A stretch of 54,551 bases of DNA from Macrostomum lignano (taxonomy: Eukaryota). The notes under the pieces were generated by a model, which saw nothing but the letters and a program-made list of their open reading frames with translations, was not told where the DNA came from and did not search any database. The DNA lies in the NCBI GenBank assembly GCA_002269645.1, contig NIVC01004215.1:1-54551 (forward strand), written 5' to 3'. Below, piece by piece: positions 1-31,600 of the stretch; within the stretch, counting starts at the first letter, position 1; each line of letters opens with the position of its first letter. The position numbers and the translations under genes are program-made.

Positions 1-821
1 CAGTGTTCTGCACAGCAAAGTTGCCCACAGCAAAGAAACTCCAATTTTAGACTATACGAAGTTTCACTGCCACGAAGTCCCAGAACAAACTTATTTTGTT
101 ACCCTTTTGCTTTGCCCATCATAGTATAATATCAAACTTGTGGGTGTAATCCCGTGCATTGACAACTTTAGTGATTTTGCTTAAATCATTTTGAATCCGC
201 AGAAGATTAAAGGAATAAACAAAAACATTTTACAGCCTTAAAAGATTGCTTTTAAAACGTATCTTAATTCTAAACACAGATTCTACACAGTAGTCAACGT
301 AGACGTTCAATGCTAACACACGATCAGGGAATCAAACGAATCCTCTTGCTAACCCAATTCTCCATAGTAAGAGAGTTGTTACTTTTTAATTTTTTCTTCT
401 TAATTAAACTTCAGCTGCTAATTAAAAAATCATAACCATACATCAAAGCTTAAAACCACGTCAACTGTGTTATCGTAGTATAACAAAACGCAATGACGCG
501 AGGTATTAGTTGACAAAGAAGATTTTTGCCCTCAGCATATTTTGGCCCCGCTCGCAGCTGTAAGAATACCGGTGAATTTTTACTAACCAGCTTTACAGCA
601 AGTCAACAAGTCAACGTAGGAGTATTTCTCATGCATTGACTTTCTTTTTAGACATTCTTTAGAGACACTAAAAACTGTAAATAAGTACCACTGATATGTG
701 ACATTTAGTACCTACATCACTAACTTCATTCGATGTTTCTCCACCCAAAGTAGGTCTCTTGCTGCTAAACTTTATTAGTTAAAGCCAGCACACAAAACAA
801 CCAACTGAACTGAATCCACAG

Positions 822-1229
822 ACAAGCTGAGCTTCAACACGTGCTTCCAGACCTCGACGGGATGGAACGGAGTCTGCAAGCGAGCCATGGATGGAAACAA
901 AAACCAGGATTACGGCAAGCACTCCTGCACCCACACTAAAGCCCCTGGCGGATTCTGGCAAGGAAGCTTTACCAGACCCGCTCACATCAAGGAGGTCGTC
1001 ATCTACAACAGGCTCGACTGTTGCTCCAACCTACTCAACAACTTCGACATCATCGTGGACGGACAGGTGTGCGCCAGACACAGGTCCAGCACGTTCTTCT
1101 CAGTGAAGAGATTCAAGTGCGACAAGGTCGGTCAGAATGTCATCATCAGGACAAATCTGAAGAAGTACCTCACTCTGTGCGAGGTCGAAGTGTTCGGAGA
1201 GTACACCAAGCTGGCCGCTAAGAGATCTG
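822..1229 (+). CDS. F-type lectin domain exon A1 (intact, 408 nt)
   Basis: Acceptor CCACAG|AC; reads KLSFNTCFQTSTGWNGVCKRAMDGNKNQDYGKHSCTHT...NRLDCCSNLL...LTLCEVEVFG; donor G|GTGAGT at 1230. Confidence 0.88.
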
Positions 1230-4200
1230 GTGAGTGAGAAATAATTATTGCGTGATACATTTCAGTAGAGAGTATATGAGTGATTGCTGACTCAATTGCA
1301 GATATGCTGCCTCTGAGCCATTGCTCTCAGAGCTCTGTCGGCTGGAGCGGCGTCTGCAGCAGAGCCATCGATGGAAACACCAACCAGAACTACTGGGGAC
1401 ACTCGTGCACTCACACAAAGCTGGAGAGCGGCTGGTGGATGGCCAAGACTCAGAAGCTGGCTCACATCAAGGAGATCTCTTCAACAGACTCGACTGCTGC
1501 TTTGATAGACTCACAAACTTTGTGGTCACGGTGGACGGTCACGTGTGCGGCTCGTACCACTCTCACAGCGTCTTCAAGGTGACGACGTTCAGGTGCAACA
1601 GAGTAGGCAGGGTCGTGATGATCCGCAGTCGCAAGAGGACCTACCTGACTCTATGCGAAGTTCAGGTGTTCGGATCGTACACAAAGAGATCCACAGGCAG
1701 TAAGTTGATAAATTTTTTTTTCATTTTACTAAAATGGGCCAATCTAAATTTTCACGTATAGATTTCATGACAGCAACTGCAGCTGCAAAAATAATTCCCA
1801 ACTTTTTTCTCCATGCAATTACTGTAACCAAAGTCATATCAATCGGCACAAAGTGGAAAGCGGCAAGCGAATATAAGATGTAAAAAACGGTACTCGTACG
1901 CTCGCACCGCTCTAATGGACCTTTAGTGTTGTGCGCTCGGTCTTCGTGGAGGTACGTCCTGGCAGTTGTTAGCACCCGCTCTGCTTGACACTGGCGCCCA
2001 GGTTTCATTGGTTCTACCCAGGTTCTAGCCTTCATATACCGGTATTGAAGTGAGCCTGATGCGTTTTGGTAACTCTGACGTGAAACAGCATGGTTTGAAA
2101 GTGGTTTTCATTTTACTGGCTCTAAAGTTTAGCGGCGAAACCAATGTGAGAAAGTTGCTCAACACGTTTGTGGACTTGCCAATGACTGCGAATGGAATGA
2201 AAATATGAAGACCTAGAAGCTGAAGCTGCTTGGGACAGGCGAAGCACAAATCTGCTCGGCGTACCCGTTACCGCACCTGCAGCACACTATGGATGCTCTG
2301 GTCGGGTGCTCCTGGTTCTTACCACCAGGTGAAGTTGGCGGAGGAGGACCTATATAATACGGCCTTCTATTCGACCCTTGGCCTCATGCAGTTTCGCAAA
2401 ATGGGCTTTGGAATGTAAACCGCCCCAGCGACGTTTCTGCGGCTCATGAAGCTGGTGATGTCGGGCCTATTTCTGGAACTTGCAGTGCTGACTTGCATCG
2501 AAGATGTCGTTCTCGTCATCAGGACCTTCGCCGAGCATCTGGTGAGGCTGGAGCGCCTTTTTCAGTGGCTGCGTGATGTGGGTCTCAAAATACACAAGGC
2601 AAAGAGCGTGTTCGGCCATAGCCAGCTGCTGTACCTGGGACAACTGATCAACGAGCAGGGCATTGCACCGAACCCTAGCAAGGTGGAGGTCATTCGCCAC
2701 ATGCCTAGTTCAAATTCGGCCGAAGAGGTCAAGCGGTCTCTCGGCATGGATTCTACGGCCGTTTCATCGAAGAGTTCAGCCAGACGGCGAGAGTCCTGCG
2801 CGAGGTCGGCGTGAAATCAACAGACTTCACATGGACCAGCGACTGCGAGCGAGCTTTCAAGGAACTGGAGAACTAGCTGACGATGGCTCCGGTTGTGAAA
2901 GTGCCGGGATTTCACCAGGTAGTTTGTGCTCAGCTGGGACAGCAGCCAGTTCGCCGTCAGCGCGGTACTCAGCCAGCTGCATGGGGACGCTAAGCTGCCG
3001 GTGGCGTTCGCCTCTCCCACCCTCAACAAGGCCGAGCGAGACTACCCGGCTACAGACCTGGAGCTGCTGGCACGGTTTGGATTCTGAAGCACGTCAGAAC
3101 GGACTTGCTGAGTGTACCGTGCTCTACAGTCTATTCGGACCACCGACCGCTGCAAGGTCGGCTGGTGACCAAGGACACGTATAGGGTCGGCTGGCACGGG
3201 GACTGTCGACTCTGTAGCAGTTCTTTTTCGAGTTGCGGTACCGGCCGTGCAGAGACAACGTGGTGCCGGATGCGTCAAGCCGGGTGGCCTGTACTCGTCT
3301 GCAGACTCGGTGGGACGACGATGGTGACCTGCACGAGGAACCCGACGCGTAATCGCATGCGACGTGCAACTCATATATCCTGAGCATGTGCGACACGTTC
3401 TCTAAGCGGATGGAGACGCAGCTTTTGTGACGATCGATCCCATCTGGTGCAGCACAGCGAACAGGGTCAGCAATTCCAGAGCGAGATGTTCAGCCGTCAC
3501 TGCTAGCGACTGGGCGTCAAGAAGATTCTCACAGACCGGAAGCTGTCGTACTGTACATTACTTGGTTCTATAACACCTCGGTGCACAGTACCACCCACAT
3601 CAGTCGTACAAGGTCTTTCACGGCTGGCTCTTGACAGCTGACAAATGAACGACGACCTGCCGACAGCGGACGGCAGACATCACGGCTTTCTGCCGCGGAC
3701 TCAAGAAAAATCATCAGAGCGCCTGAACCATGATCCCACCATGACTGTCAGTTCGTGTCAATTGAGGAGGGCCTACTCGTGATGCTCCGCTCGCAACTTC
3801 GTCATAAAGCGCAGGCATACGCGGTGCCTGAGCGACAAGTGGAAAGGTCGTACCGAGTCTCGAGGCGCTTGGGCAAGGTCAACTACCACATCCAAGAAAA
3901 GGAGGCGCAGGCACAGGCTGGTGGTGCTAATATAGCTTGACGTAATCTACGATTCTCGAAAGGAAATCCCAAGCACTTTTTAAATATTGGACAAGACTTT
4001 TAGACAAGACTTTTAGACGAGACACTTTTAGACAAGGATAAACTGCGCGTCTGGTGTCACTAATATGTGAAATTTAGTACCCAAAAAGCAAACTTCATTT
4101 GATGTTTCACAACCCAAAGTAGGTCTTTCGCTACTAAACTTTATCAGTTAAAGCCAGCACAGAAAAACAATCAACTGAAGGAGATAATAAACATGTTTTA

Positions 4201-7200
4201 ATGCCGATGCATTTCGTCACCCAATGGACATCCTCAGGGCTTACTAAATTTATTAAACGAAATTAAATTTTGCTCTAATACATAGACTTGAACAATCAAC
4301 TATTTGACAGGAGTAAAAATTAAGTGCATAACAGGGTAACACTAGTTTGGGTGAAAGGCGTGGTACAAATCAAAATAGTCCAGTCTGGTTATTGAGCGAG
4401 CTAAAAAATGTTGAAGCTGACGGCTAGCACCGCCCCCATGGCAAGCTGATGGTTCAGAGTAGGTTGTTGGGCCTTGATGTGCATAGCCTCTAATAAGCTA
4501 AGTTTGTTATCGTTCTTACAAAATTCAATAGTCTCACGTCAATATATAAGAGAAGAGGGGGCCGTAGCCCTGCGGTCTAGCGCAGGCTCTCGTGTGCCAG
4601 CGACCCAGGCTCGATTCCAAGTGCAGTCAAATTAATTTGGGGCTGAATTGGAATCTCGGCTTGGCTCTGCTCGTGCAATTAACGGCCTTGAGGGCCAACC
4701 CCCCAATGCGCAGTGAAGTGTACATGCCTAACGATAAAATAAAGTTAGGGCCGCTGTACACTCCTGTGTGGGTGTGTGCCTGCGTAGGTATCCGCGCGCT
4801 TGTGTGCCTGCTCAGGGGAGTCGGCGGAATGGGTGGTAATGCCTCTCGCCGGTTGTGTGTCTGTGCCGCTTAAAGTGCGCCAGGGTGCACACAACCCCCT
4901 GCCTCTAATAAAAAAAACAATATATAAGAGCGAAATTTCATTTCCTTTAATACATTTGGTAAGCCCTGACGATATCCATTATGGCAGTATGCATCGGCAT
5001 TAAAACATGTTGATTATCTCCTCCATTTATTTACTGTTTATTAAGCGAGCTTCATTACCAACCAACTGAACTGAATCCACAGACAAGCTGAGCTTCAACA
5101 CGTGCTTCCAGACCTCGACGGGATGGAACGGAGTCTGCAAGCGAGCCATGGATGGAAACAAAAACCAGGATTACGGCAAGCACTCCTGCACCCACACTAA
5201 AGCCCCTGGCGGATTCTGGCAAGGAAGCTAAGCTTTACCAGACCCGCTCACATCAAGGAGGTCGTCATCTACAACAGACTCGACTGTTGCTCCAACCGAC
5301 TCAACAACTTCGACATCATCGTGGACGGACAGGTGTGCGCCAGACACAGGTCCAGCACGTTCTTCTCGGTGAAGAGATTCAAGTGCGACAAGGTCGGTCA
5401 GAATGTCATCATCAGGAACAATCTGAAGAAGTACCTCACTCTGTGCGAGGTCGAAGTGTTCGGAGAGTACACCAAGCTGGCGCTAAGAGATCTGGTGAGT
5501 GGGAAATAATTATTGCGTGATACATTTCAGTAGAGAGTATTATGAGTGGTTACTGACCCAACTGCAGATATGCTGCCTCTGAGCCATTGCTCTCAGAGCT
5601 CTGTCGGCTGGAACGGCGTCTGCAGCAGAGCCATCGATGGAAACACCAACCAGTACTACTGGGGACACTCGTGCACTCACACGAAGCTGGAGAGCGGCTG
5701 GTGGATGGCCAAGACTCAGAAGCTGGCTCACATCAAGGAGATCAAGATCTTCAACAGACTCGACTGCTGTTCTAATCGACTCACAAACTTTGTGGTCACG
5801 GTGGACGGTCACGTGTGCGGCTCGTACAACTCTCGCGGTGTCTTCAAGGTGAAAACGTTCAGGTGTAATAAAGTCGGCAAGGTCGTGATGATCAGAAGTC
5901 GCAAGAGGACTTACCTGACTCTATGCGAAGTTCAGGTTTTCGGATTGTACACAAAGAGATCCACAGGCAGTAAGTTGATAAGTCTTTCTTTTTCGTTTTA
6001 CTAAAATGGACCAATCTAAATTTTCAGGTATATAATCACGTTTAACCTGATAGTTTTAAAAGGATGTCCATAGTTATCTGATGCCACATGTTGAAGGTGC
6101 CGACGGTGTTGTGGTGATGATGGAATGCTCGAGAGACCAGCTGAGGGTGTCCAGAAGTTGAGGTTTGCTCACTGTCGAGGCATGATCGGCGAAACTCGTG
6201 AAATTTGTATCAGGGTGTTCATAGTCACCTGGTGCCACCTGTTAATGGTCTAGAAGCTCCGTCTCGGTGAAGGCCAGTGACTAACGAAGTCAGAGCTGAT
6301 GCAGACACATGTGATCAACGTACTGATGAAAGTTGGAGTCTTGGCAAGGCTGCGCTGAGGCACAGTGCTGATTGGCGTACAGGGGTATACTGAATAATAC
6401 ATTAGCGCTTATGGAAAAAATTAAATCTTCTGGCAGAATCGTCGAATATCTCGACGGTCCGGAGGGCTGGCGATTTGATTTTTGTTTCAAAAGGTGCGCA
6501 ACAAAAAGTTAGCCGGTGTTTTTGAATTTCGTGTGCCTGCGTTGCTTCGTTCCGGCGCAGCAAGAAATTGTCGGGGGGGGGGGGAAGCAGTCAAAGTGTA
6601 ACATTGCAAACAGGTAAAGATGACGCAGTTAGTGACCATCATTTGGAATGCATTCTTTCAACATTGGAAGGCACTTTCGTCAAATTTGCACGCCATACTT
6701 CACCAAGGCAACTTCTTCTTGCCAGCGCCCACAACGCTGCGGCTGCAGCTGGGGGTAGGCGCCTAGAGGCGCCCTAGGGCACGCAGAATTTTGATGACCG
6801 CCACCGGATGGGCAAGCAGGTCATCCCGAACATCCGGGTCCAGCTGGCCCCTGACGCGATCGGCGCGGGGGCACTCGTGCAGAAGATGATCCTCGTTGTC
6901 CACGGCCACGCAATCGCGGCAGGGAGGGTCGGTTTCAATGCCGATTCGGTGGCGAGTGGCTGCAGCCAGCATGGAAGCTCCGGCCCGCAGCTGGTTCACA
7001 GCGACCGCCTCGGTGCGAGTCAGGTTGGTCGGAAGGGGTGGCCAGGGATCGGTCGCAAAGAATTTCCGATCTTTGGTGCGGCGGTCCCGCTTGATCGCCG
7101 CTTTGGCCGCTTGGAAGGTAATGGGAGCCGCAGTAGCGCCGTTGAGGTTTACCGCTCTGTTGGCCGCCCTGTCGGGGACTTCATTGCCGGAGATACAGCA

Positions 7201-9828
7201 GTGGGCCGGCACCCAGATCAGTTCATAGGAGCGGTTGCTGGCAGCTAGCTCAAACCAGCAGTCCGCCGCCAGCTGGGTGGACTGGGTGAGGGCCCCAGTG
7301 TCCAGCTTTGAGAGCCGCCAGCGAGTCGGAGTGGACACGGACCGTCTGTCCAAAACCTGGGTGCAGCTCGGCCGTGATCTGGATGGCAGTGCGGATGGCA
7401 GTCAGTTCTGCTTGAGTGGAGCTGGTGAGAATGCCGGCTGGACTAGTGACGACCTGGTGCCACAGCTTGGTGATTATCACAGCCGCGCTCCTACTGTTAG
7501 TAGTGCCCTCCGATGCTGAGCCGTCCGTCCAGACTTCAATGTCCGGCGTCGCAAGGTCGGCGAGGTAGGCGACGGCACGATCCCGCTTCAGGTCATGCAG
7601 GGTGCTGTGTCCGCAGGAGGCGGTGAGGTCCAGCTGGATCGTCAGGTTCGTCGGGACGTTTGTCGGATCTAGCCGGCGCGGCGGATGCGTCTCCCGGTTG
7701 TGGGAGTCCAGCGTGGGGGTGGACGGTAGCCGAGGTTAGCCGCTCGTTCCGCAGCAATGTGGCCGATGGGCGGAAGGTTGGTGGTGGCCAGGTTAGTGGC
7801 ACGGGTCGGAGTGATGCAGCCCGAGATGATGCGGGCGCAGCAATTCTGTTGTTGTTGGACCAAGGCAACTGCTGCTGATGCTGATGCTGCTGCTGTGGGT
7901 GATATTTTATGGAGGCTACGGAAGCCTTAGAGCAGTCTAGTGAGAAATTCTAACAACTGTCCACAATACTAATGTTGGCCAACTCTGCAGTTTTACGAGC
8001 GTAACAGTGGATGAGGAAGATAGACTGGCAATGCAGAATGGTTTGTACAAGCAAAAAAACGATACAATACAATCATAACCTAATATATTAGTTACACCAT
8101 GTCAATTTAAACACTATGTTTTACTTAAACCCACCTTGACAGAGGCAGAGCCTAGGGTTTGCCAAAGCATGCTTTAGAGTTTAGGCAGACGCTGCCTTTC
8201 ATTCAATGATAGCCTCCAATCTTCATTGGCTAAATAACAAATTTATTACCATTTTCGTTTAAACCTACATGTGTGTCCCAACTATACTAAGTTATGACTT
8301 CAGATTTACGAATTTATTAACAAAATTCTCCTCTTTCCTACAAGCGTCTATTCAGATACAAAATTTATCATATAGCCCAGGTACCAGACCGACAAGCAAC
8401 CAGACCTACTGTTTTAGAAGTACATGTACCACTAATTTGTGAAATTGAGTACATACAAAGCAAACTTCATTTGATGTTTCACAACCAAAAGTAGGTCTCT
8501 TGTTGCTAAACTTTATTAGTTAAAGCCAGCACACAAAACAAACCAACTGAACTGAATCCACAGACAAGCTGAGCTTCAACACGTGCTTCCAGACATCGAC
8601 GGGATGGAACGGAGTCTGCAAGCGAGCCATGGATGGAAACAAAAACCAGGATTACGGCAAGCACTCCTGCACCCACACTAAAGCCCCTGGCGGATTCTGG
8701 CAAGGAAGCTTTACCAGACCCGCTCACATCAAGGAGGTCGTCATCTACAACAGGCTCGACTGTTGCTCCAACCTACTCAACAACTTCGACATCATCGTGG
8801 ACGGACAGGTGTGCGCCAGACACAGGTCCAGCACGTTCTTCTCGGTGAAGAGATTCAAGTGCAACAAGGTCGGTCAGAATGTCATCATCAGGAACAATCT
8901 GAAGAAGTGGTTCACTCTGTGCGAGGTCGAAGTGTTCGGAGAGTACACTAAGCTGGCAGCTAAGAGATCTGGTGAGTGGGAAATAATTATTGCGTGATGC
9001 ATTTCAGTAGAGAGTATTATGAGTGAATACTGACTCAATTGCAGATATTTTGCCTCTGAGCCGTTGCTCTCAGAGCTCTGTCGGCTGGAACGGCGTCTGC
9101 AGCAAAGCCATCGATGGAAACACCAACCAGAACTACTGGGGACACTCGTGCACTCACACGAAGCTGGAGAGCGGCTGGTGGATGGCCAAGACTCAGAAGC
9201 TGGCTCACATCAAGGAGATCAAGATCTTCAACAGACTCGACTGCTGCTTTGATAGACTCACAAACTTTGTGGTCACGGTGGACGGTCACGTGTGCGGCTC
9301 GTACCACTCTCACAGCGTCTTCAAGGTGACGACGTTCAGGTGCAACAGAGTAGGCAGGGTCGTGATGATCAGCAGTCGCAAGAAAACTTACCTGACTCTA
9401 TGCGAAGTTCAGGTGTTCGGTGATTATTTCAAGAAACGGCCCAAGTTTAGTGAGTCTTTTTCTCTTATTTCTATTTTCTCTTAGTGAGCTTTTGTGAGCT
9501 ATGATAGTAACTATGAAGTACTTTGCTTCTACTTTCAGAGTATCTTGGCTGCTTCTATGACAGCAAGGAGTACCCGCAATTTTCCATTAAAGCGGCTTCA
9601 AGCAGAAAAATGACGCAGCGCAAGTGCAACCGGTTCTGCAAGTCCCGCGGCACTACTTACTTTGCAGTGCAGTCCGGCAGTCGGTGCTTCTGCGGCGAAA
9701 ACTACATTTACGGCAATGGAGAAGCGGAGGACGGAGACTGCAACGTGCCGTGCTCTGGAGACTCAGGAATCAAGTGCGGCGGCAAAATGCGGAACGCCGT
9801 GTTCGAGGTGGATAAAAACGTGTCGTGA
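822..9828 (+). CDS. Multi-domain F-type lectin (fucolectin/FTP) + C-terminal WSC protein, 5'-partial; exons A1 822-1229, B1 1302-1699 (frameshifted), A2 5083-5494 (frameshifted), B2 5568-5969, A3 8564-8971, B3 9045-9449, WSC 9539-9828
   Basis: Six exons encode FTP-domain motifs (A-x-DG-N...SCTHT...W...I-x-NRLDCC...LTLCEV-x-VFG). All are flanked by AG/GT in phase 1-1. No start or signal-peptide exon is seen in the window. Confidence 0.85.
1302..1699 (+). pseudogene. F-type lectin domain exon B1 with 4-bp deletion frameshift
   Basis: GAGATC-TCTTCAAC at ~1472 versus GAGATC-AAGA-TCTTCAAC in B2/B3; length 398 vs 402 nt; splice sites intact. Confidence 0.85.
2050..3940 (+). mobile_element. Degenerate Ty3/Gypsy LTR-retrotransposon pol fragment (RT, RNase H, integrase)
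   Basis: YHQV...TAF..T.GL.QF..M.FG, APATF.RLM, CIEDVVL (YxDD-like), LYLGQ.I...GI.PNPSKV, DSSQFAVSAVLSQ, PVAFAS..LNKAERDY..TDLELLA, YSDHRPL, SEQGQQFQSEMF; many stops and frameshifts; LTRs not identified. Confidence 0.85.
4180..5021. mobile_element. Non-autonomous DNA transposon (MITE-like) with 33-bp TIRs
   Basis: 4180-4212 GGAGATAATAAACATGTTTTAATGCCGATGCAT is the reverse complement of 4989-5021 with 1 mismatch. It interrupts the intron segment that is contiguous upstream of A1 and A3. Confidence 0.8.
4553..4918 (+). mobile_element. tRNA-derived SINE with 12-bp TSD, nested in the MITE
   Basis: A-box-like TAGCCCTGCGG, B-box-like GGCTCGATTCC, A-rich tail AATAAAAAAAAAC; direct repeat AATATATAAGAG at 4541-4552 and 4919-4930. 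Confidence 0.75.
5083..5494 (+). pseudogene. F-type lectin domain exon A2 with 5-bp duplication and 1-bp deletion
   Basis: GGAAGCT-AAGCT-TTACC at ~5223 versus GGAAGCTTTACC in A1/A3; GGCGCT vs GGCCGCT near 5480; length 412 vs 408 nt. Confidence 0.85.
5568..5969 (+). CDS. F-type lectin domain exon B2 (intact, 402 nt)
   Basis: TGCAG|ATATG acceptor, A|GTAAGT donor; H-x25-RLD-x4-R fucose-binding-like motif (NRLDCCSNR). Confidence 0.88.
6080..6585 (-). mobile_element. Fragment of the repeat family also at 53823-54551 (inverted copy)
   Basis: Reverse complement aligns by eye with ~53895-54380 (e.g. CAGAATCGTCGAATATCTCGACGGTCCGGAGGGCTGGCGA). Confidence 0.75.
6714..7858 (-). mobile_element. 5'-truncated I-group non-LTR retrotransposon (RNase H + CCHC), with 12-bp TSD
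   Basis: Minus strand AELTAIRTAIQ, VHSDSLAAL, WVPAHCCISGNEVPDRAA (RNase H) and CRDC-x6-EDHLLHECP knuckle; (AAG)n tail at the 3' end; ACCAAGGCAACT at 6702-6713 and 7859-7870. Confidence 0.88.
8564..8971 (+). CDS. F-type lectin domain exon A3 (intact, 408 nt)
   Basis: Same acceptor/donor context as A1; open frame. Confidence 0.88.
9045..9449 (+). CDS. F-type lectin domain exon B3 (intact, 405 nt)
   Basis: TGCAG|ATAT acceptor, A|GTGAGT donor; NRLDCCFDR motif; distinct C-terminal linker DYFKKRPKF. Confidence 0.88.
9539..9828 (+). CDS. Terminal WSC (carbohydrate-binding) domain exon
   Basis: TTTCAG|AG; YLGCFYD...MT...C...C......YFAVQ.G..CFCG.........C...CSGD....CGG...NAVF, stop TGA; phase matches B3. 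Confidence 0.88.
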
Positions 9829-9876
9829 AGTTTTGTGAACGTGGCTACTCCTTGGAGTGGCTTGACAAGAAGCTAC

Positions 9877-9882
9877 AATAAA
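9877..9882 (+). terminator. Putative polyadenylation signal
   Basis: AATAAA ~50 nt after the WSC stop codon. Confidence 0.5.
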
Positions 9883-11034
9883 GTCTAAAATATAGTGTAA
9901 TGGTTTAGGTTAAACAACTAAATACTGGATTTTCGGTTTTATTCTCTACTTAATTAGAAACAGGTGAATTGTCAGTGGACTTGATTTAGTACCCGTGTTA
10001 TTTAATATACTACAACTGGTGATTAACATCTTGCATTGTCAATCAGACAGTCGTTTTTGTTTGTCTTTTCTCTTTACAATTTTTACTGCCGGATGTGTCT
10101 CTGTTGGTGCAAACAGAGCATCTTAATAACTAAACTGAACAGCTATGCATATGCTAAAACTTGACCACGAGCATTGGATGCACTTGATTACGAAAGAAAG
10201 CAAATGTAACGTCTCATATGGGAAATTTGACTTTCGCCTTTATGCAATCTACTGTGGGAGCCACCATGTGCCTGTCAGATATTGACTGGCATTGCATAAG
10301 ATGAAAACATTGTAAAAACTGTTTTTTTAATAATCAGCCAATGACCACTGTAGTATAACAGACCACAAGACTCAAGGATCGTGATTTTTTGGAAACCAAT
10401 ATCTTGGAAAAAGTACACTGCCAAGATAGTCAAAATCTGTTTTCTTCATTAAAAAAACACTAGCACAAAATCTTGATTTAATATTCAAGAAAGAACAAAT
10501 CAAAAGTTCAGCTACCAGTTATGATAAATTTAAGAATGGTAATTTACGAGCTATATTGTCTCAGTTCAATTGCCACCATTAACTACGCATTGAATCTTTG
10601 CAGTGTACTTTTTTTCAAAGAAACTGACTTCGGAAAAATACACGATCTTTTTTAGTTATAAGTCTTGTTATAATACAGCGGTCGTTGTTACGAGTATAAT
10701 GCGCTCCATTGCTTCTATAGATTTCAACTTTCTGGCGGTACAGACTATACTACAAGTCACGACACAAGCGGTACCATGCAGACTATACTTCTCTGCCGGC
10801 AGTCGAATAGTCCAAATTGAAAAGTTAAAAGTAAACAATTTCTTAGAATTTAAAGCTGAATGACTGCGAGTCGAGCATCTTGTCGAACTGTCCTGCGTTT
10901 TGCCATTTACTTATTTACATAAAAAATAGGTGAAGTATAAAATATCCACCATCCAATTTAACGATGAGTACCGTCGATAATAATATCGAGTCGCTGACTC
11001 TAATAGGCAGATGTGCAACTGACAGCTCAGTCGC

Positions 11035-11726: not shown

Positions 11727-11845
11727 ACCGAGCCCTGGATGGAAATTCACTAACTAGCACTACTGAGGACACTCGCGCACTCACACGAATCTGGAGAATG
11801 GCTGGTGAATGGACCAAGACTCAAAAGCTGGCTTACATGAAGGAT
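11727..11845 (+). pseudogene. Decayed fragment of an F-type lectin B exon
   Basis: GAGCCCTGGATGGAAA...GGACACTCGCGCACTCACACGAATCTGGAGAATGGCTGGTGAATGG..CAAGACTCAAAAGCTGGCTTACATGAAGGA matches the B exons with stops and indels. Confidence 0.75.
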
Positions 11846-13371: not shown

Positions 13372-16300
13372 TTAGGAGCTGCCACTCTGCGGCAGGAGAG
13401 CAGCTACGGCACCAGATCGAGGGAGGTCGCTATCAGCAGCCAAGCTGTACATGTCCATGGCAACTAGCTGGGCTCGAGCCAGTCCGTTAGGCTGTACAAC
13501 TAATTTATGCCCCATAGCGGTGAGCATCTTGCCAATATCGGTTGGTAAGCGGCTTTCGGATTCCAGCACCGGATGGTCGGGCGGCAGCAGCGGATTCACT
13601 CTGGGCGCTTTGTCGGTCGATGCCAAAGGCAGGCAGGGCTGTCGTTTCGAGTCCTTTCGACGGCTGCTCACAACGTGCGGGCACACGCTGGTGTCGGCGG
13701 AGAGGTCCGACAGTCTGTGTGAAAAGGTGATTAGCACTTTTTTATAGACAAGGAAAAGGCTGCGCTACGTAAGGTTCAGAGAACTGTTGCGTTTTCAGAA
13801 GATAGAGAGCGATTGTCAAGGAGGCGAGTAGGATTATCCGGAATGGGATCTTTGAGTAGGATTACCAGGTAGGGGATATTTGAGTAGGATTATCAGGTAG
13901 GGAATCTTGAGTAGGATTATCAGGGAGGGGATCTTGAGTAGGATTATCAGGGAGGGGATATTTGAGTAGGATTATCAGGGAGGGGATCTTGAGTAGGATT
14001 CTCAGGGAGGGGATCTTTGAGTAGGATTATCAGGGAGGGGATCTTGAGTAGGATTATCAGGGAGGGGATATTTGAGTAGGATTATCAGGGAGGGGATCTT
14101 GAGTAGGATTCTCAGGGAGGGGATCTTTGAGTAGGATTATCAGGTAGGGAATCTTGAGTAGGATTATCAGGGAGGGGATATTTGAGTAGGATTATCAGGG
14201 AGGGGATCTTGAGTAGGATTCTCAGGGAGGGGATCTTTAAGTAGGATTATCAGGTAGGGAATCTTGAGTAGGATTATCAGAGAGGGGATATTTGAGTAGG
14301 ATTCTCAGGGAGGGGATCTTTTAGTATGATTATCAGGTAGGGAATCTTGAGTAGGATTATCAGGGAGGGGATCTTGAGGAGGACTATCAGGGAGGGGATC
14401 TTGAGTAGGATTATCATGTAGGGAATCTTGAGTAGGATTATCAGGGAGGGGATCTTGAGTAGGATTCTCAGGGAGGGGATCTTTGAGTAGGATTATCAGA
14501 GAGAGGATCTTGAGGAGGATTATCAGGGAGGGGATATTTGAGTAGGATTCTCAGGGAGGGGATATTTGAGTAGGATATCAGGTAGGGAATCTTGAGTAGG
14601 ATTATCAGGGAGGGGATCTTGAGTAGGATTATCAGGGAGGGGATCTTTGAGTAGGATTATCAGGTAGGGAATCTTGAGTAGGATTATCAGGGAGGGGATC
14701 TTGAGTAGGATTATCAGGTAGGGAATCTTGAGTAGGATTATTAGGGAGGGGATCTTGAGTAGGATTATCAGGGAGGGGATCTTGAGTAGGATTCTCAGGG
14801 AGGGGATCTTTGAGTAGGATTATCAGGTAGGGAATCTTGAGTAGGATTATCAGGGAGGGGATCTTGAGTAGGATTATCAGGTAGGGAATCTTGAGTAGGA
14901 TTCTCAGGGAGAGGATCTTAAGTAGGATTTTCAGGTAGGGGATCTTGAGTAGGATTCTCGGGAAGGAGAACTTTAAGTACGATGCTCATAAAGGGGTATA
15001 AAGAGGATTATTAAAGAATCTGAAGGCCCCTAACCTGGCAGCCAACCAAGCGGTAACGCTGGGCACAGCGGTGCTATTTGAGGCGCCAAAGGCGAATCTC
15101 AGGCCGCATCGTTGACGCGGATTGAAGGCGAACGATGGCGACATTAGCGTGGCCGGCCGTCTGCCACCGGCCGGTGCGTTGCTATGGTTACCAGCGGAGC
15201 CGCCGGACAGATCGAAATTAGCCAGCGCATTGTTAAGCAAGATGCCATTAGGCGAGGTGGTCAAACCGGCGGCGAACGGCGTGTTAATACTCGTCTCCAT
15301 GGATACGTATAGTTCGTCGTTGTCAACGGCAACCAGGCTAGAGCTGGCCTGCAGCGGGCGATTCGGCTGAGGCCACGGCTGCTCGGCGTAGGCAGTCGAA
15401 TTGTCGGCGTTGAATACGCGATTGTCGGCAATTCGACTTCGAAGTCGGTCGGCGTAAGCGGGCGTCGACAGGTCGGCGGCGAGGGCGGTAGAGGACTCGC
15501 CGATGGATTGTACAGCGCCGAGGGCGAATTTGGCAGCTTCGGCGAACCGATGGAGCAGAAGGCCGGTGGAATTGGACAAGTCGTTGCTGGATGCTGGAAG
15601 TAAGGGTGATGAGGGGGGGAGGTATTCGATAGCCCTCGGGTCCTTTGTAACTTTACAATAGCAATCTGGCCCTCTCAAGGTTTGTCTCTCCTCACGGGGG
15701 GGGGCGTCGCCATGGATTCTATGGTAGAGGGGGGGGGACAAAGCCAAGAGTTTTGCATGTACATGACTAAATTTCTACGTTTATTATTTTCAGAATCGGG
15801 GCACTCATTTTGGCGCCGCAGGCACTCATTTTAGCGCCGCAGGCACTCATTTTAGCGCCGCAGGCACTCATTTTAGCGCCACAGGCACTCATTTTAGCGC
15901 CGCAGGCACTCATTTTAGCGCCGCAGACACTCATTTTAGCGCCGCAGACACTCATTTTAGCGCCGCGGGCACTCATTTTAGCGCCGCAGGCACTCATTTT
16001 AGCGCCGCAGGCACTCATTTTAGCGCCGCAGGCACTCATTTTAGCGCCGCAGGCACTCATTTTAGCGCCACAGGCACTCATTTTAGCGCCGCAGGCACTC
16101 ATTTTAGCGCCGCAGACACTCATTTTAGCGCCGCAGACACTCATTTTAGCGCCGCGGGCACTCATTTTAGCGCCGCAGGCACTCATTTTAGCGCCGCAGG
16201 CACTCATTTTAGCGCCGCAGGCACTCATTTTAGCGCCGCAGGCACTCATTTTAGCGCCACAGGCACTCATTTTAGCGCCGCAGGCACTCATTTTAGTGCC

Positions 16301-18222
16301 GCAGGCACTCATTTTAGCGCCGCAGGCACTCATTTTAGTGCCGCAGGCACTCATTTTAGCGCCGCAGGCACTCATTTTAGCGCCGCAGGCACTCATTTTA
16401 GTGCCGCAGACACTCATTTTAGCGCCGCAGGCACTCATTTTAGCGCCGCAGGTACTCATTTTGGCGCCGCAGGCACTCATTTTAGCGCCGCAGACACTCA
16501 TTTTAGCGCCGCAGGCACTCATTTTAGCGCCGCAGCCACTCATTTTAGCGCCACAGGCACTCATTTTAGCGCCGCAGCCACTCATTTTAGCGCCACAGGC
16601 ACTCATTTTAGCGCCACAGGCACTCATTTTAGCGCCACAGGCACTCATTTGTTGTCGCCCTAAAGCAAAATATTGATTTCGCTAACAGGTCAACAAAGGT
16701 GGGGACTAACCCGGATATCCGGCCAACACTTGGGCCAGCAGCAGAGTGTAGGCGCCGCCAGAAGAAGGCGGAGGAAAAGTTCTAATGGTAAAATTGCGGT
16801 AGTGCCCAACCAGAGCGGTTCGCTCCTGCACTTTGTAGCCGGTCAGATCCGCCTGGGCCAGAAAGCCGCCATTGTCAGACGAAGTGGACAGCAGCTGGGC
16901 GGACAGACTGCCGCTGTACATTGCATTGGCGCCTTGGTCCCGTAGAAATTTCAAAGCGCCAGCAAGCTCAGGCATGGTGATCAGGGTGCCAGTTGGCTTG
17001 GGAGCTCCGCTAGGTGTCAGGTACACGCGCTTTAACAAAGGATTGCCGGCTAAACGGGCCGCATTGTTCGCCACTAATAGGTGAACATCGGCCGGCATGT
17101 GAAAGCCGCTTGTTGCCAGGCGAATCGCCGGAGCAAATAGGCTGGACCATTTCAGCCGGCCGAACCGCCTTGATGGGGGAAAGAAGAGGGCTAATAAATA
17201 CGGCGTTGACAGACGAGCGGCATAGCAACCAGACTAGAAACACCATAGCAACCAGACTAGAAACACCATAGCAACCAGACTAGAAACACTATAGCAACCA
17301 GACTAGAAACACAATAGCAACCAGACTAGAAACACCATAGCAACCAGACTAGAAACACCATAGCAACCAGACTAGAAACACCATAGCAACCAGACTAGAA
17401 ACACCATAGCAACCAGAATAGAAACACCATTGCAACCAGACTAGAAACACCATAGCAACCAGACTAGAAACACCATAGCAACCAGACTAGAAACACCATA
17501 GCAACCAGAATAGAAACACCATTGCAACCAGACTAGAAACACCATAGCAACGACATAGAAACAGCATAGCAAGTGGCGAAACACCATAAAACCCACATAG
17601 CAACGGCATAGTAACAACAAAAAACTCACTTATGCGCCACCTCTAAACCGCGCGCAAAGCCGGGCACGCCAGCACCAAGCGCAGATTTCAACGCTCTGGA
17701 CTCGCCGCCAGCCGCTGCAAACGATTTCGCGGTGACGGTGGCTGGCGCAGTTTCTAAGAAATCAAACAAAGTAGTCTTGTCCGCCCGATGACTGTGCACC
17801 AGCATGAGGCCTCCGCCGCCCAGACCAGTGATTGGATATTGTATAACGGCATTGCATAGAGCGGCGGCAACAGCTGCATCAACAGCGCTACCACCGTTGG
17901 TGAGCATCTCAAGGCCGCATTTTCCCGATTCGGTTGTGTCGGCGGCCACCGCGCCAAGTCGTTGAACTTGCGGCTCGCCGAATATTATGGTCAGAATGAG
18001 AGCCAAGGTCACTGCGGCGCTGAATATCACAGAGACTAATACGATTAGTGTCATGCCGCGCGGCGGGGGGCAGCGCAATTTTCGTTGCAATGGAGACGAG
18101 CTGGCCGGCTTGTCTGCTGACGACGGCTCATCAGCGCCGATAGCGGCAGCGCCTGCGGCGTTGTTCGGATCGGCGCCTTCGTCGGTCTGGTTCACCAGAT
18201 TTGTTTTGTCACCTTCGCTCAT
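13372..18222 (-). CDS. Gamma-glutamyltranspeptidase / glutathione hydrolase, GGT7-like (~650 aa); exons 18222-17630, 17168-16711, 15593-15035, 13714-13372
   Basis: N-terminal acidic tail + TM anchor; GAVAAD...GLEML..GGSAVDAAVAAALC, GLGGGG.MLV, DF.ETAP, GVPG..RGL..AHKRFGRL.W..LFAPAIRLA..GF, GILLNN, GRRP...MSP, RCG..FAFGA. Exon phases (2,1,2) join into one 1953-nt ORF. Confidence 0.9.
13810..14960. repeat. 27-bp G-rich minisatellite (GAGTAGGATTATCAGGGAGGGGATCTT)n in GGT intron 3
   Basis: About 40 tandem units with recurring variants. Confidence 0.95.
15795..16648. repeat. 21-bp minisatellite (GCGCCGCAGGCACTCATTTTA)n in GGT intron 2
   Basis: About 40 units; produces the artefactual MSACGAK/APQALIL ORFs. 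Confidence 0.95.
17221..17620. repeat. 23-bp minisatellite (CATAGCAACCAGACTAGAAACAC)n in GGT intron 1
   Basis: Tandem units decaying toward the exon-1 donor. Confidence 0.95.
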
Positions 18223-18284
18223 GCTTGCGGGCTGGCGATTGGCTGAAGTGCGCATGCATAAAAACGGTCAGATTCTTATTGAGG

Positions 18285-19015
18285 TTGCTGAGTCTGATTC
18301 TAAAGGTGCTGAGGCCGATTCTAAAGGTGCTGAGTCCGATTCTAAAGGTGCTGAGTCCGATTCTAAAGGTGCTGAGGCCGATTCTAAAGGTGCTGAGGCC
18401 GATTCTAAAGGTGCTGAGTCCGATTCTAAAGGTGCTGAGTCTGATTCTAAAGGTGCTGAGGCCGATTCTAAAGGTGCTGAGTCCGATTCTAAAGGTGCTG
18501 AGTCTGATTCTAAAGGTGCTGAGTCTGATTCTAAAGGTGCTGAGTCTGATTCTAAAGGTGCTGAGTCCGATTCTAAAGGTGCTGAGTCCGATTCTAAAGG
18601 TGCTGAGGCCGATTCTAAAGGTGCTGAGGCCGATTCTAAAGGTGCTGAGGCCGATTCTAAAGGTGCTGAGGCCGATTCTAAAGGTGCTGAGTCCGATTCT
18701 AAAGGTGCTGAGTCCGATTCTAAAGGTGCTGAGTCTGATTCTAAAGGTGCTGAGTCTGATTCTAAAGGTGCTGAGTCCGATTCTAAAGGTGCTGAGTCCG
18801 ATTCTAAAGGTGCTGAGGCCGATTCTAAAGGTGCTGAGGCCGATTCTAAAGGTGCTGAGGCCGATTCTAAAGGTGCTGAGGCCGATTCTAAAGGTGCTGA
18901 GTCCGATTCTAAAGGTGCTGAGTCTGATTCTAAAGGTGCTGAGGCCGATTCTAAAGGTGCTGAGTCCGATTCTAAAGGTGCTGAGTCTGATTCTAAAGGT
19001 GCTGAGTCTGATTCT
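18285..19015. repeat. 21-bp minisatellite (GCTGAGTCCGATTCTAAAGGT)n upstream of the GGT ATG (probable 5'UTR intron)
   Basis: 35 units by the ORF translation; minus-strand acceptor CACTTCAG at ~18243-18250 lies just before the ATG. Confidence 0.92.
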
Positions 19016-19019
19016 TAAA

Positions 19020-19135
19020 GAGATTTGAATCTGATTCTCAATGAGATTTGACTCTGATTCTCAATGAGATTTGACTATGATTTTAATTGAGATTTGAGCC
19101 AGATTCTCAATGAGATTTGACTCCAGATTCTCAAT
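19020..19135. repeat. 23-bp short array (GAGATTTGACTCTGATTCTCAAT)n
   Basis: About 5 units adjoining the 21-bp array and sharing the CTGATTCT core. Confidence 0.8.
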
Positions 19136-28600: not shown

Positions 28601-31600
28601 ACTTGTTAACAGTTAGGAAAAAGGCAAAGATGGGAGTAATGCATGTTAAACTAAGATTTGAGGCCTTTGCAAATTCTCTCCATTCCTCAATCTTCTCATC
28701 CTCTTTTTCTTTTCTCTCTCATCCCTTATCCCTTCTCTCTTTCCTCTCCTCTCCTATCTCTTCTGTCTCCTCTCTACATTCTTATCTCTCCTCTCGTCTC
28801 TCTCCATTCCACTCTACTCTCTCATCTTATCTTCCCTCTCGTCTCTCTCCACTCTACTCTCTCATCTTATCTCTCCTCTCTTTTCTACTCTCTCATCTCT
28901 CCTCTCTTCACTCTCCTCTCATCTCCTCTTTATCCTCTCTTCTCTCATCTACTCTCTCCTCTTTCCTCTTTCCTCTCTTCTGATCTCATCCATCATCTTT
29001 TCTTTCCTCTTTCCTCTCATCTCCTCTTCTCTCTCATCTCTTTTTCCTCCCTCAGCTTTTCTCTCCTCTTCTATCTTTTCTCCCATCGCATCGCTCGCCT
29101 CTCCTCTGTTTGCTTATCTCTAATCTTCTATTCCCTCTACTTTGAAGTAAGAAAATATGCACATATTTTTGCTGAAGATAAGAGGAGAGAAGAGGGCATT
29201 GAGGAGAAAGGGTAGAGAGAAAGGGGGAGAAGAGAGGAGAGTAAAAATGAGACGAGAGAGAAGAGGGAAAAGGGGGAGAGAGAGAAGAGGGGAGGCAAGG
29301 TAGAGAAGAAGAGAGAGATGAGAGTTGAAGATACACCAACCTTGCTGGTTAGGAAGTTTCAAAGAACCCGAGGGGCGAGGGCCAGATAGAGGGGCTTCGC
29401 GAGCCGGAGTTTGCCAACCCCTGCTCCAGAGTTTAAGAAATCAATGGGAAACTGTTGACGCGGGCTTCTGATTTCAAAGATCTTGTCTGTGGTTGAAGAC
29501 TTCTATTCTGTTTTTGCTCTCTTGCCACACTTGCACCTACTACCCCTGATTGCCTCTGATTGTGACTTACTTCCCTCTTATTGCGACTTAGTTGCTTCTT
29601 TTTGCGACTTACCTAATCCTTTTTGCGACTTACCTAACCCTTTTGCGACTTACCTAATCCTTTTGCGACTTACCTAATCCTTTTGCGACTTAGCTGATCC
29701 TTTTGCGACTTACCTGATTCTTTTTGCGACTTACCTAATCCTTTTTGCGACTTACCTAATCCTTTTGCGACTTACCTAACCCTTTTGCGACTTACCTAAT
29801 CCTTTTGCGACTTACCTAACCCTTTTGCGACTTACCTAATCCTTTTGCGACTTACCTAATCCTTTTGCGACTTACCTAACCCTTTTGCGACTTACCTAAT
29901 CCTTTTGCGACTTACCTAACCCTTTTGCGACTTACCTAATCCTTTTGCGACTTACCTGATTCTTTTTGCGACTTACCTAATCCTTTTTGCGACTTACCTA
30001 ACCCTTTTGCGACTTACCTAATCCTTTTTGCGACTTACCTAATCCTTTTTGCGACTTACCTAATCCTTTTGCGACTTAGCTGATCCTTTTGCGACTTAGT
30101 TTGCTTCTTTTGCGACTTACCTGATCCTTTTTGCGACTTACCTGATTATTTTTACAACTTACCTGATCCTTTTTGCGACTTACCTAACCCTTTTGCGACT
30201 TACCTAATCCTTTTTGCGACTTACCTAATCCTTTTGCGACTTAGCTGATCCTTTTGCGACTTAGTTTGCTTCTTTTGCGACTTACCTGATTCTTTTTGCG
30301 ACTTACCTGATCCTTTTTGCGACTTACCTGATCCTTTTTGCGACTTACCTAACCCTTTTGCGACTTACCTAATCCTTTTTGCGACTTACCTAACCCTTTT
30401 GCGACTTACCTAATCCTTTTGCGACTTACCTAACCCTTTTGCGACTTACCTGATCCTTTTGCAACTTACCTAACCCTTTTGCGACTTACCTGATCCTTTT
30501 TGCGACTTAGTTTGCTTCTTTTGCGACTTAGTTTGCTTCTTTTGCGACTTACCTGATTCCTGTTGCGACTTACCTGATCCTTTTTGCGACTTAGTTTGCT
30601 TCTTTTGCGACTTACCTGATCCTTTTTGCGACTTACCTGATTATTTTTACAACTTAGTTTGCTTCTTTTGCGAATTGTTTTTCTTTTGCTTCACCATTTT
30701 CCCTGAACTGCTCTTTCTTTCGCTTTCCTCTTGCCTTTCTTGGTTCTTGTGTTTTTCTGTTTTTGGTTGACTCAATTTTGCAACTTACCCCTGGTCAGCC
30801 ACGATTTACGGTGGCCGGATCGGCCAGGTCGGCCAGCAGTTGCGCATGTATGGTGTTTTTTATAGAATTATGTGGAAGAATTAATGTTAAGTGGAAAAAT
30901 ATAAAAAAAATTATAGCCTAAAAGGGTCTATTATGCAATTAAAAGAATGATCATTTATTTTTGCAATATAAAAACGTCTTTTGTTATTGCAACATTAGTA
31001 TATTGCATAGATTTGAGAGTGGACATGCACTCAATTTGTGTGGGCATTTGTAATTATTCAATTTGTGCTTAAGTATGCACCTAGTAGAGCTGTCACGAGA
31101 TCTCGACGAGACAAGATTCGAGACAAGATCTCGACATTTTTTCTCGTCTCGAGAAATCTCGAATTTTGTCAAGAAATTCGAGACGAGATTCAAGAATTTT
31201 TCTGATACCTTTTTTCAAAAGCTTTTAAGTGATAAGATATAAAAAGGGGAGCAAATTTTCATATAAATACAACTGTTTGTTGTAACACGCTTGATAGGGC
31301 AATTTTCAAATGGTAAAATCTAGCCAATGTCGAGCAGTTATTTAACGAACGTCGTTATATACGAGTTTGCATCGCATATGCGCTCTTTTAGTTATCATTT
31401 CAGTTCTGCAGCAAGGTGTATCATAGCAGACTTGAAGACAATCTACACAGGTCTTTTGACAAATTAGTAATAGACATAGTAGGGCCAAGGGCCTATATGC
31501 TACAAGCATAAATTCTTATGAATAAATAGCAAAGAATTTAAACTAGAATTAATAAAGTATTCTAGAAAATCTAAAAAATAAATTTTAGAATTGTATCTTA

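Follow-up and report, generated by a model that had tools for sequence, protein, structure and literature searches.

The Macrostomum lignano locus described here raises the question of what a run of tandem lectin exons sharing one reading phase represents when two adjacent exons of the run are frameshifted. The preliminary description had proposed either a Dscam-like cassette producing lectins of variable valency or the loss of one A-B unit by complementary pseudogenization. We analyzed the window (i.e., the whole stretch of contig NIVC01004215.1, positions 1 to 54,551), the forward strand of which carries F-type lectin exons of types A and B in the order A1-B1-A2-B2-A3-B3, followed by a last coding exon for a WSC domain. 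Four of the lectin exons are intact: A1 (822 to 1229; 408 nt), B2 (5568 to 5969; 402 nt), A3 (8564 to 8971; 408 nt), and B3 (9045 to 9449; 405 nt), the last of which has a 3' end specific to its WSC junction. B1 (1302 to 1699) measures 398 nt (402 minus 4), and A2 (5083 to 5494) measures 412 nt (408 plus 5 minus 1). The WSC exon (9539 to 9828) encodes a domain with 8 Cys residues and ends with a TGA stop codon at 9826 to 9828; an AATAAA polyadenylation signal (9877 to 9882) follows on the same strand, 49 nt past the stop codon. Splice borders of the form CAG/.../GTRAGT occur on every exon from A1 through WSC, and the first two bases of each exon complete a split codon, which places all of them in phase 1-1. 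The proposed exon order and common phase were thus borne out, as was the presence in the window of B1 and A2 as the only frameshifted exons; the B1 acceptor is corrected to 1301/1302.

The lectin exons match Pfam F5_F8_type_C_2, with hits to PF22633 (E=3.5e-16) and PF00754 (E=9e-8). Among PDB entries they match the tandem F-lectin FBP32 best (E=3e-24), with further matches to a Streptococcus pneumoniae fucolectin-related protein, the lectin domain of lectinolysin, and the eel agglutinin AAA. The WSC exon, with its eight Cys residues, covers profile positions 1 to 82 of 82 in PF01822 (E=7e-18) and matches the Kremen WSC domain in the PDB (about E=5e-11). On these matches, the six exons and the last exon are identified as six F-type lectin domains and a WSC domain, in agreement with the earlier domain calls. 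The calcium motif reads AMDGN in type A and AIDGN in type B, and the DCC Cys-Cys pair is present in all six domains. The fucose-binding motif of F-type lectins consists of a His residue followed by R-X-D-X4-(R/K) (PMC5712786). The corresponding triad, H-X25-R-L-D-C-C-x-x-R, was found in B2, in B3, and in B1 and A2 after repair of their frames, with a His-to-Arg spacing of 25 residues versus 24 in the published formula and 26 in AAA by residue numbers. In A1 and A3, Leu replaces the third basic residue of the triad (codon CTA in A1), and A2 keeps the ancestral Arg (CGA). The domains are putatively fucose-binding.

No signal-peptide exon was found within the window upstream of A1, A2, or A3, where the sole candidates lie inside transposon open reading frames (ORFs). 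As the preliminary description had anticipated, the gene continues upstream beyond the window, with a signal-peptide exon located 147 to 228 bp before the window start, on NIVC01000031.1 (positions 30579 to 30660 of region L002). This exon reads MTSRSNFQVAWHRWLLFLMLLQAVTAN, directly followed by GTAAGC, and ends in phase 1; the lectin product is predicted to be secreted. The same signal-peptide ORF is conserved ahead of a neighboring paralogue, BOX15_Mlig033443g2 (PAA93238.1), and the window gene lies 5 kb downstream of this gene. The neighbor belongs to the same family and likewise has a signal-peptide exon, phase 1-1 lectin exons of 402 to 411 nt, and a WSC end, but it differs in carrying 15 lectin-domain exons (402, 405, or 411 nt), which include B' and A' subtypes. 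Together, 21 of 21 lectin exons in the two genes are in phase 1-1. The locus is the body of one M. lignano gene for a predicted secreted, multivalent F-type lectin, the downstream member of a tandem paralogue pair, and it provides a case of a Macrostomum-specific expansion of F-type lectins that have several domains and a fused WSC domain. A decayed B-type lectin exon relic with stop codons (11730 to 11845, forward strand; about 58% amino acid identity over 26 residues) sits 1.9 kb downstream of the gene. The gamma-glutamyltranspeptidase gene next to the locus had no counterpart in the protein database. Pfam searches with the other long ORFs of the window gave marginal matches only, and the ORFs at 15.8 to 16.7 and 18.0 to 19.0 kb are tandem-repeat artifacts.

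The A copies within the window gene are 97.5 to 98.8% identical to one another, compared with 92 to 94% to the neighbor's A exons, a level of similarity that reflects homology and not chance. Their derived states form a mosaic: B1 and B3 agree in their middle parts, YL is common to A1 and A2, NN to A2 and A3, and Leu to A1 and A3. This mosaic and the identity pattern clearly point to exon-level concerted evolution. Because each exon encodes a single domain in phase 1-1, the array could grow by exon duplication. We propose that it expanded recently via unequal crossing-over of a two-exon unit (an intron of about 140 nt, an A exon, a 72-nt intron, a B exon, and an intron of about 60 nt) and that gene conversion has held the copies 97 to 99% alike. 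Transposons accumulated in the long B-to-A introns.

The sequence between B1 and A2 had been described as carrying Gypsy, MITE, and SINE insertions. This intron contains a degraded LTR-retroelement pol fragment with RVT_1 and RT_RNaseH (1760 to 4060, forward strand), which is also present in L002 at 99.96% identity, and an 856-bp foldback or MITE-like element (4173 to 5028, unstranded) with 111-bp terminal inverted repeats and an inner 636 bp of no assigned type. The SINE was not confirmed: ARAGORN and Rfam gave no tRNA-like match. The foldback element stops 55 nt short of the A2 acceptor, on its upstream side. It separates A2 from the left portion (4062 to 4184, forward strand; homologous to 690 to 821 and 8426 to 8563) of a duplicated intron segment found ahead of each A exon. 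The B2-to-A3 intron holds one or more degraded repeats with an RNase H remnant (6030 to 8420, reverse strand), relatives of which occur at 53.9 to 54.4 kb of the window and in an intron of the neighboring gene.

The lesions in B1 and A2 are small. In B1, AAGA is lost between 1477 and 1478, with the first premature stop codon reached 36 codons downstream. In A2, duplication of AAGCT at 5225 to 5234 creates an in-frame TAA at 5229 to 5231; a further single nucleotide is missing between 5481 and 5482. The net changes in B1 (-4) and A2 (+4) cancel, and the frame is regained at the end of A2, yet six stops lie between. Each of the two exons has a single unique substitution and retains, unchanged, the splice sites of the intact copies, which argues that the lesions are either assembly artifacts or very young; judged from this near-identity, any loss of an A-B unit is likewise very recent or an artifact. 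The restriction of the three indels to two adjacent exons is the pattern that neutral skipped exons would show, although it has a probability of about 0.1 by chance alone.

Assemblies of the locus disagree about these lesions. Window positions 1 to 5116 correspond to NIVC01000031.1 (L002, 30807 to 35926) at 99.75% identity; over these 5.1 kb, a single substitution and 12 indel positions separate the window from this Mlig_3_7 copy. Since the subgenomes differ by about 2% SNPs, the two are the same copy. The L002 version has AAGA in B1, that is, no B1 deletion, and its A1 exon has lost 1 bp at each of two sites (window positions 1099 and 1215). Two models based on the ML2 assembly, P0001 and P0089, also lack the B1 deletion, and their A2 contains the -1 and not the +5. 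P0089, in which A1 and B1 are intact and 4 of the 6 lectin domains are used, has a tail 100% identical to 13.4 to 16.9 kb of the window and thus represents the same locus. In UniProt, A0A1I8HT41 is a model of the window locus and A0A1I8I0B7 is likewise listed for it; such public models derive from a short-read StringTie/TACO assembly plus TransDecoder, and these two begin at an internal Met without a signal peptide and have 4 or 7 domains. Searches for higher-identity proteins or transcripts of the gene turned up only three models, all in UniProt and derived from the ML2 assembly; NCBI and read-level assemblies contributed none. NCBI holds no transcript-based protein for the window locus, although it holds one for the neighboring gene.

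If all three indels were assembly artifacts, the gene would be an intact six-domain lectin plus WSC. The 12 indel positions against 1 substitution between the window and Mlig_3_7 are consistent with such errors, as is the fact that the broken exon differs from assembly to assembly; wherever a coding site could be compared in all three assemblies (three sites), 2 of 3 back the intact state, and the broken exons are otherwise pristine. However, the -1 in A2 appears independently in P0001 and P0089, and the ML2 gene models bypass it via a cryptic acceptor (CTCTCAG/AG) 29 nt inside B2. Furthermore, the +5 is a clean tandem duplication that adjoins ancestral bases specific to A2, an arrangement that no error would produce, and the rest of the window coding sequence has no frameshifts. 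We therefore regard an entirely artifactual origin as unlikely. The ML2 version of A2 departs from the window only toward the A1/A3 state and looks like a paralogue over-correction. Given this appearance, and because ML2 and Mlig_3_7 were built on the same PacBio reads, their testimony on B1 is weakened. All remaining coding exons of the window are open (A1, B2, A3, B3, WSC, and three long gamma-glutamyltranspeptidase exons), so that the window assembly appears accurate, and the three indels in it could well be genuine. Taken singly, the B1 deletion stands at about even chances of being real, the A2 +5 is somewhat more probably real than not, and the A2 -1 is likely to be so. In repeat-rich neopolyploid genomes such as this one, frameshifts in tandem exons vary between assemblies of one locus and hence are not readable as biology without raw reads.

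Loss of an A-B unit by complementary pseudogenization depends on both lesions being real: B1 and A2 would then always be spliced out, leaving a working lectin composed of signal peptide, A1, B2, A3, B3, and WSC. The A1-to-B2 junction is indeed in frame, as the preliminary description had noted; it recreates the same Asp codon and yields an open 636-codon frame up to the WSC stop. In addition, the lesions are confined to two adjacent exons while the others are intact, the foldback element lies near the A2 acceptor (55 nt), and the sole signal-peptide exon is upstream of A1 with none before A3, so that a secreted product must start there. Against this reading, the acceptors and donors of B1 and A2 are the same as those of intact copies, and the A1-to-B1 intron measures 72 nt, compared with the 4338-nt intron needed for the skip. 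Short introns are spliced by intron definition; with the B1 acceptor only 72 nt beyond the A1 donor and the splice sites intact, the transcript is expected by default to include B1 and A2. With one unique substitution in each supposedly dead exon, a skipping mechanism has had no time to evolve, and the B1 deletion, although present in the window, is missing in two other assemblies (Mlig_3_7 and the ML2 models). We consider it quite unlikely that the unit was lost in this way.

A further reading holds that the symmetric exons are alternatively included, which would vary the valency of the product and allow broken exons to be tolerated. Phase 1-1 throughout both genes fits such skipping, but this phase is the rule in all 15 lectin exons of the neighbor and accounts for the growth of the array, not for its splicing, and the splice sites of B1 and A2 are unchanged. 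In Dscam, the variants are mutually exclusive, one per cluster, and are guided by docking and selector RNA pairing. An inverted-repeat scan of positions 1 to 10000 (coarse, with a seed of 10) detected no docking- or selector-type complementarity linking introns; it returned just the foldback arms and three short matches of 16 to 27 nt. Moreover, the alternatives in a Dscam array all encode one and the same segment, only one of them being used, whereas the exons here are successive whole domains that intact paralogue models carry many in series. Annotated models do contain fewer domains than there are genomic exons, as regulated skipping would produce, but near-identical repeats collapse in short-read data, so that which exons the models skip cannot be distinguished. 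P0090 uses 7 of the 15 neighbor lectin exons and P0089 uses 4 of 6, reflecting either real skipping or short-read collapse; skipped and retained exons in the models are 97.5 to 100% identical. The P0003 paralogue was mapped on region L001; that locus is a complex segmental duplication and gave no information on whether models skip divergent exons. Databases and literature yielded no isoform data for the gene, and literature searches for Macrostomum F-type lectins or fucolectins, and for F-type lectin plus WSC, found nothing relevant. A precedent exists in oyster bindin, in which alternative splicing yields one to five F-lectin repeats per mRNA (PMC5712786). Overall, programmed skipping of either the Dscam or the bindin kind is unsupported at this locus, and we judge regulated cassette skipping to be very unlikely.

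We instead favor, as fairly probable, an ordinary secreted F-lectin gene with a duplicated two-exon array homogenized by conversion, in which the indels are artifactual or very young. The structure of the gene, its domain identity, its paralogy, the conversion mosaics, and the disagreement between assemblies are established by the data above. Under this ordinary-gene reading, the three indels in B1 and A2 would be no designed feature: they would stem from consensus errors in a repeat that is hard to assemble, or else from inactivating mutations of very recent date. If they are mutations, the gene may be turning into a null allele or pseudogene, in an inbred line whose genome has three subgenome copies; the window thus possibly holds a nascent null allele.

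Among known systems, striped bass FBP32 (PDB 3CQO) and eel AAA (1K12) belong by sequence to the same fold family and share the calcium motif, the Cys-Cys pair, and, with the domains other than A1 and A3, the His/Arg triad. The window gene differs from lectins of the FBP32/AAA type in having six domains instead of two and in adding a C-terminal WSC domain. Binary fish lectins alternate N-type and C-type domains with differing binding-site residues, and the window gene likewise alternates types A and B (PMC5712786). The combination of F-lectin with WSC is absent from the F-lectin review (PMC5712786) and from every searchable paper, and this architecture is therefore one that the searchable F-lectin literature does not discuss. 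The likeness to Dscam clusters is limited to tandemly duplicated similar exons: Dscam variants replace one another, whereas the window exons are additive whole domains, mutually in frame. The sperm bindin gene of the oyster Crassostrea gigas resembles the window gene in its tandem F-lectin repeat exons, adjoining retroelement sequence, a repeat number that varies between products (here, between gene models), and recombination among repeats; its alternative splicing is documented from cDNAs (PMC5712786). Bindin differs in lacking a WSC domain and in having a variable intron, a recombination site, within each lectin domain; in the window gene no bindin-type intron occurs inside a lectin domain, and each domain is one uninterrupted exon. 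It is improbable, though conceivable, that the Macrostomum genes for F-type lectin domains fused to WSC are the flatworm counterpart of oyster bindin, in which variable inclusion of phase-symmetric exons would give secreted lectins of differing valency, so that single exons could decay while the gene survives, with B1 and A2 as the first exons caught decaying. If long-read cDNA showed variable domain numbers, this would be the second, independent case of F-lectin valency tuned by exon skipping, after oyster bindin.

The window carries, on the forward strand, the seven-exon layout of the preliminary description: six lectin-domain exons of two alternating types, i.e., A1 (822-1229; 408 nt), B1 (1302-1699; 398 nt), A2 (5083-5494; 412 nt), B2 (5568-5969; 402 nt), A3 (8564-8971; 408 nt), and B3 (9045-9449; 405 nt), and a last exon encoding a WSC domain (9539-9828), which ends in TGA and is followed by an AATAAA (9877-9882). 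All domain exons are bounded by CAG/.../GTRAGT; each opens on the final two bases of an interrupted codon and closes after the first base of another, which makes it phase 1-1. The product of A3, B3, and the last exon matched Pfam F5_F8_type_C_2 twice plus WSC. In the PDB it was closest to the tandem F-type lectin FBP32 (E=3e-24), ahead of other fucolectins, and its C-terminal part matched the Kremen WSC domain, which bears out the earlier domain calls. All of the closest protein matches come from the flatworm Macrostomum lignano. A calcium motif (AMDGN or AIDGN) and a CC pair are present in all six domains, and the His...R-x-D-x4-R triad, as defined in PMC5712786, is complete in four; A1 and A3 end in Leu. 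This third basic residue of the fucose-binding triad is Leu (CTA) at 1030-1035 (A1) and 8772-8777 (A3), and Arg (CGA) at the equivalent 5296-5301 in A2; Arg is also found in all A exons of the neighboring paralogous gene. This distribution suggests that gene conversion spread a derived Arg-to-Leu change (CGA to CTA) between A1 and A3, and that fucose binding by the type A domains may be altered or lost.

Upstream exons had been expected outside the window, and one was found in L002, the same locus on scaffold NIVC01000031.1 of assembly Mlig_3_7. This exon (ATG...MTSRSNFQVAWHRWLLFLMLLQAVTAN/GTAAGC; phase-1 donor) lies 147-228 bp upstream of the window start and is predicted to encode a signal peptide of typical form. 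The neighboring gene is preceded by the same conserved frame and 31-nt upstream block, and no comparable exon precedes A2 or A3; the gene thus has 5' and 3' ends of its own and the order signal peptide-A1-B1-A2-B2-A3-B3-WSC. The block (CCAACCGATCTCCAACGGTTGAGCTGAGCTG) is identical at L002 30452-30482 and 6962-6992, 5' of both signal-peptide exons and ~95-110 nt before each ATG, within flanks that are ~73% identical overall, and is a candidate promoter or transcription-start element. The neighboring paralogue (NCBI model PAA93238.1; L002 6962-25926, signal-peptide exon at 7072-7153), five kilobases upstream, comprises 15 lectin-domain exons plus WSC. Its lectin exons are 402, 405, or 411 nt long and phase 1-1, except for one 400-nt exon (n3; L002 8456-8855) with a -2 frameshift; PAA93238.1 begins at the first Met after n3 and takes in only 7 of the gene's exons. 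Because the neighbor's lectin exons share it, phase symmetry is a family-wide property and no mark of a splicing program. Tandem duplication of extracellular modules usually requires such symmetry.

The duplicated unit consists of ~140 nt of upstream intron, A, a 72- to 73-nt intron, B, and ~60 nt of downstream intron. The A copies are 97.5-98.8% identical within the gene and 92-94% identical to the neighbor's A exons, and the B exons show the same pattern. Derived states, polarized by parsimony against the neighbor, form a mosaic (the middle of B1 equals that of B3; YL in A1/A2; NN in A2/A3; Leu in A1/A3) that reads as a signature of gene conversion or unequal exchange. Exons have also been lost, since a decayed B-type exon (11730-11845; ~58% amino acid identity over 26 residues, with stops) lies 1.9 kb 3' of the stop codon, a remnant left by the turnover of exons or genes within this cluster. 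Degraded LTR-retroelement pol, an RNase H-bearing repeat, and a foldback element (856 bp; 111-bp terminal repeats) occupy the long B-to-A introns (3383 and 2594 nt); of the Gypsy, MITE, and SINE insertions proposed previously, the LTR retroelement and the foldback element were recovered and the SINE was not confirmed.

Downstream, a gamma-glutamyltranspeptidase gene (~14986-18255, reverse strand) has three long intact exons (Pfam PF01019 positions 2-95, 127-245, and 256-428) and public protein records yielded no counterpart. Model A0A1I8HT41 of ML2 instead runs through this stretch on the other strand, giving a 1282-aa chimera. Two 21-nt tandem-repeat arrays (15767-16676 and ~18200-19028) produce long spurious ORFs on both strands (MSACGAK.../APQALIL... 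and SDSKGAE.../ILKVLSP...), and the interval separating the lectin genes contains a match (L002 26752-27334) to related repeats at 17221-17571. On the reverse strand, an ORF at 22606-23115 matches the TLC (TRAM/LAG1/CLN8) domain (E=8e-6) and probably belongs to a ceramide-synthase-like gene as one of its exons.

Alignment of the three A-B units located the reported 4-bp deletion in B1 and +5/-1 changes in A2: B1 lacks AAGA between 1477 and 1478, AAGCT is duplicated in A2 (5225-5234), creating an in-frame TAA at 5229-5231, and one base is missing between 5481 and 5482. These changes sum to zero (1302-5494), and a full-length transcript is back in frame from B2 onward, after six stop codons that precede frame recovery at the end of A2. 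Window positions 1-5116, beyond which L002 does not extend, and L002 30807-35926 are 99.75% identical, with one substitution and 12 indel positions over 5.1 kb. The three M. lignano subgenomes differ by ~2% SNPs (PMC10733133); the two sequences thus represent a single genomic copy, and on this comparison a technical origin must account for most of their differences. The AAGA absent from the window's B1 is present in L002, which in turn carries 1-bp deletions at window positions 1099 and 1215 of A1, an exon that is intact in the window. Of the older ML2-based protein models P0001 and P0089 (UniProt A0A1I8HT41), the latter is a model of this locus, since its tail matches window 13.4-16.9 kb at 100% identity. 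In both, A1 and B1 are intact; the second A domain has the -1 and not the +5. The -1 is bypassed through a cryptic acceptor (CTCTCAG/AG) that lies 29 nt inside every B exon (5568-5597 in B2, with equivalents in B1 and B3), is used by both models (...KLALRDL/SSVGW...), and restores the frame after a -1 in the preceding A exon.

The intact state is thus backed by two of three assemblies at each of the three coding sites comparable in all three, as would be expected if the lesions were fully artefactual. However, ML2 and Mlig_3_7 share the same PacBio reads (PMC5730564), which weakens this case; every departure of the ML2 A2 from the window is towards the A1/A3 state, a pattern resembling paralogue over-correction; and no other coding exon of the window, including the three gamma-glutamyltranspeptidase exons, is frameshifted. 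Weighing these points, we consider complete artefact unlikely, put the B1 deletion at about even odds of being real, and think it probable that one or both A2 lesions are real. We favor as most likely an ordinary, recently expanded tandem-exon lectin gene, whose frameshifts would be partly errors of assembly and partly inactivating mutations of very recent origin, in a genome that is inbred and highly redundant.

The proposed splice from A1 to B2 does give a frame open through to the stop codon, as constitutive skipping of B1 and A2 would demand, but any exon subset can be dropped in frame, and this arithmetically valid solution is nothing special. The A1 donor would have to bypass the unchanged B1 acceptor at a distance of 72 nt in favor of another 4338 nt downstream. 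Since intron definition normally governs the splicing of short introns, the natural units are A-B rather than B-A pairs. Because B1 and A2, the least diverged copies, have one unique substitution each and splice sites identical to those of intact exons, they have no lengthy history as dead, skipped exons, whether or not the lesions are real. Constitutive skipping is accordingly quite improbable. Regulated variable valency would fit public models with fewer domains than genomic exons (7 of 15 for the neighbor and 4 of 6 here), but these come from short-read assembly and ORF calling, in which near-identical repeats collapse, and we judge it very unlikely. The transcript-based NCBI annotation has a protein for the neighbor and none for this locus, a weak hint of low or no expression.

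The product belongs to the F-type lectin family and in design is closest to binary and multidomain tandem lectins such as FBP32, from which the added WSC domain sets it apart; the combination of F-type lectin and WSC was not found in the searchable literature. The suggested Dscam-like cassette mechanism is unsupported, given the family-wide phase, the unchanged splice sites, and no intronic complementarity of the docking/selector type seen in a coarse inverted-repeat scan of 1-10000. Dscam exon variants are mutually exclusive and hence a poor precedent. The nearest mechanistic precedent for skipping is instead oyster sperm bindin, in which alternative splicing, documented by cDNA isoforms, yields one to five F-lectin repeats per mRNA (PMC5712786), although each bindin repeat has an internal intron, unlike the repeats of this gene.
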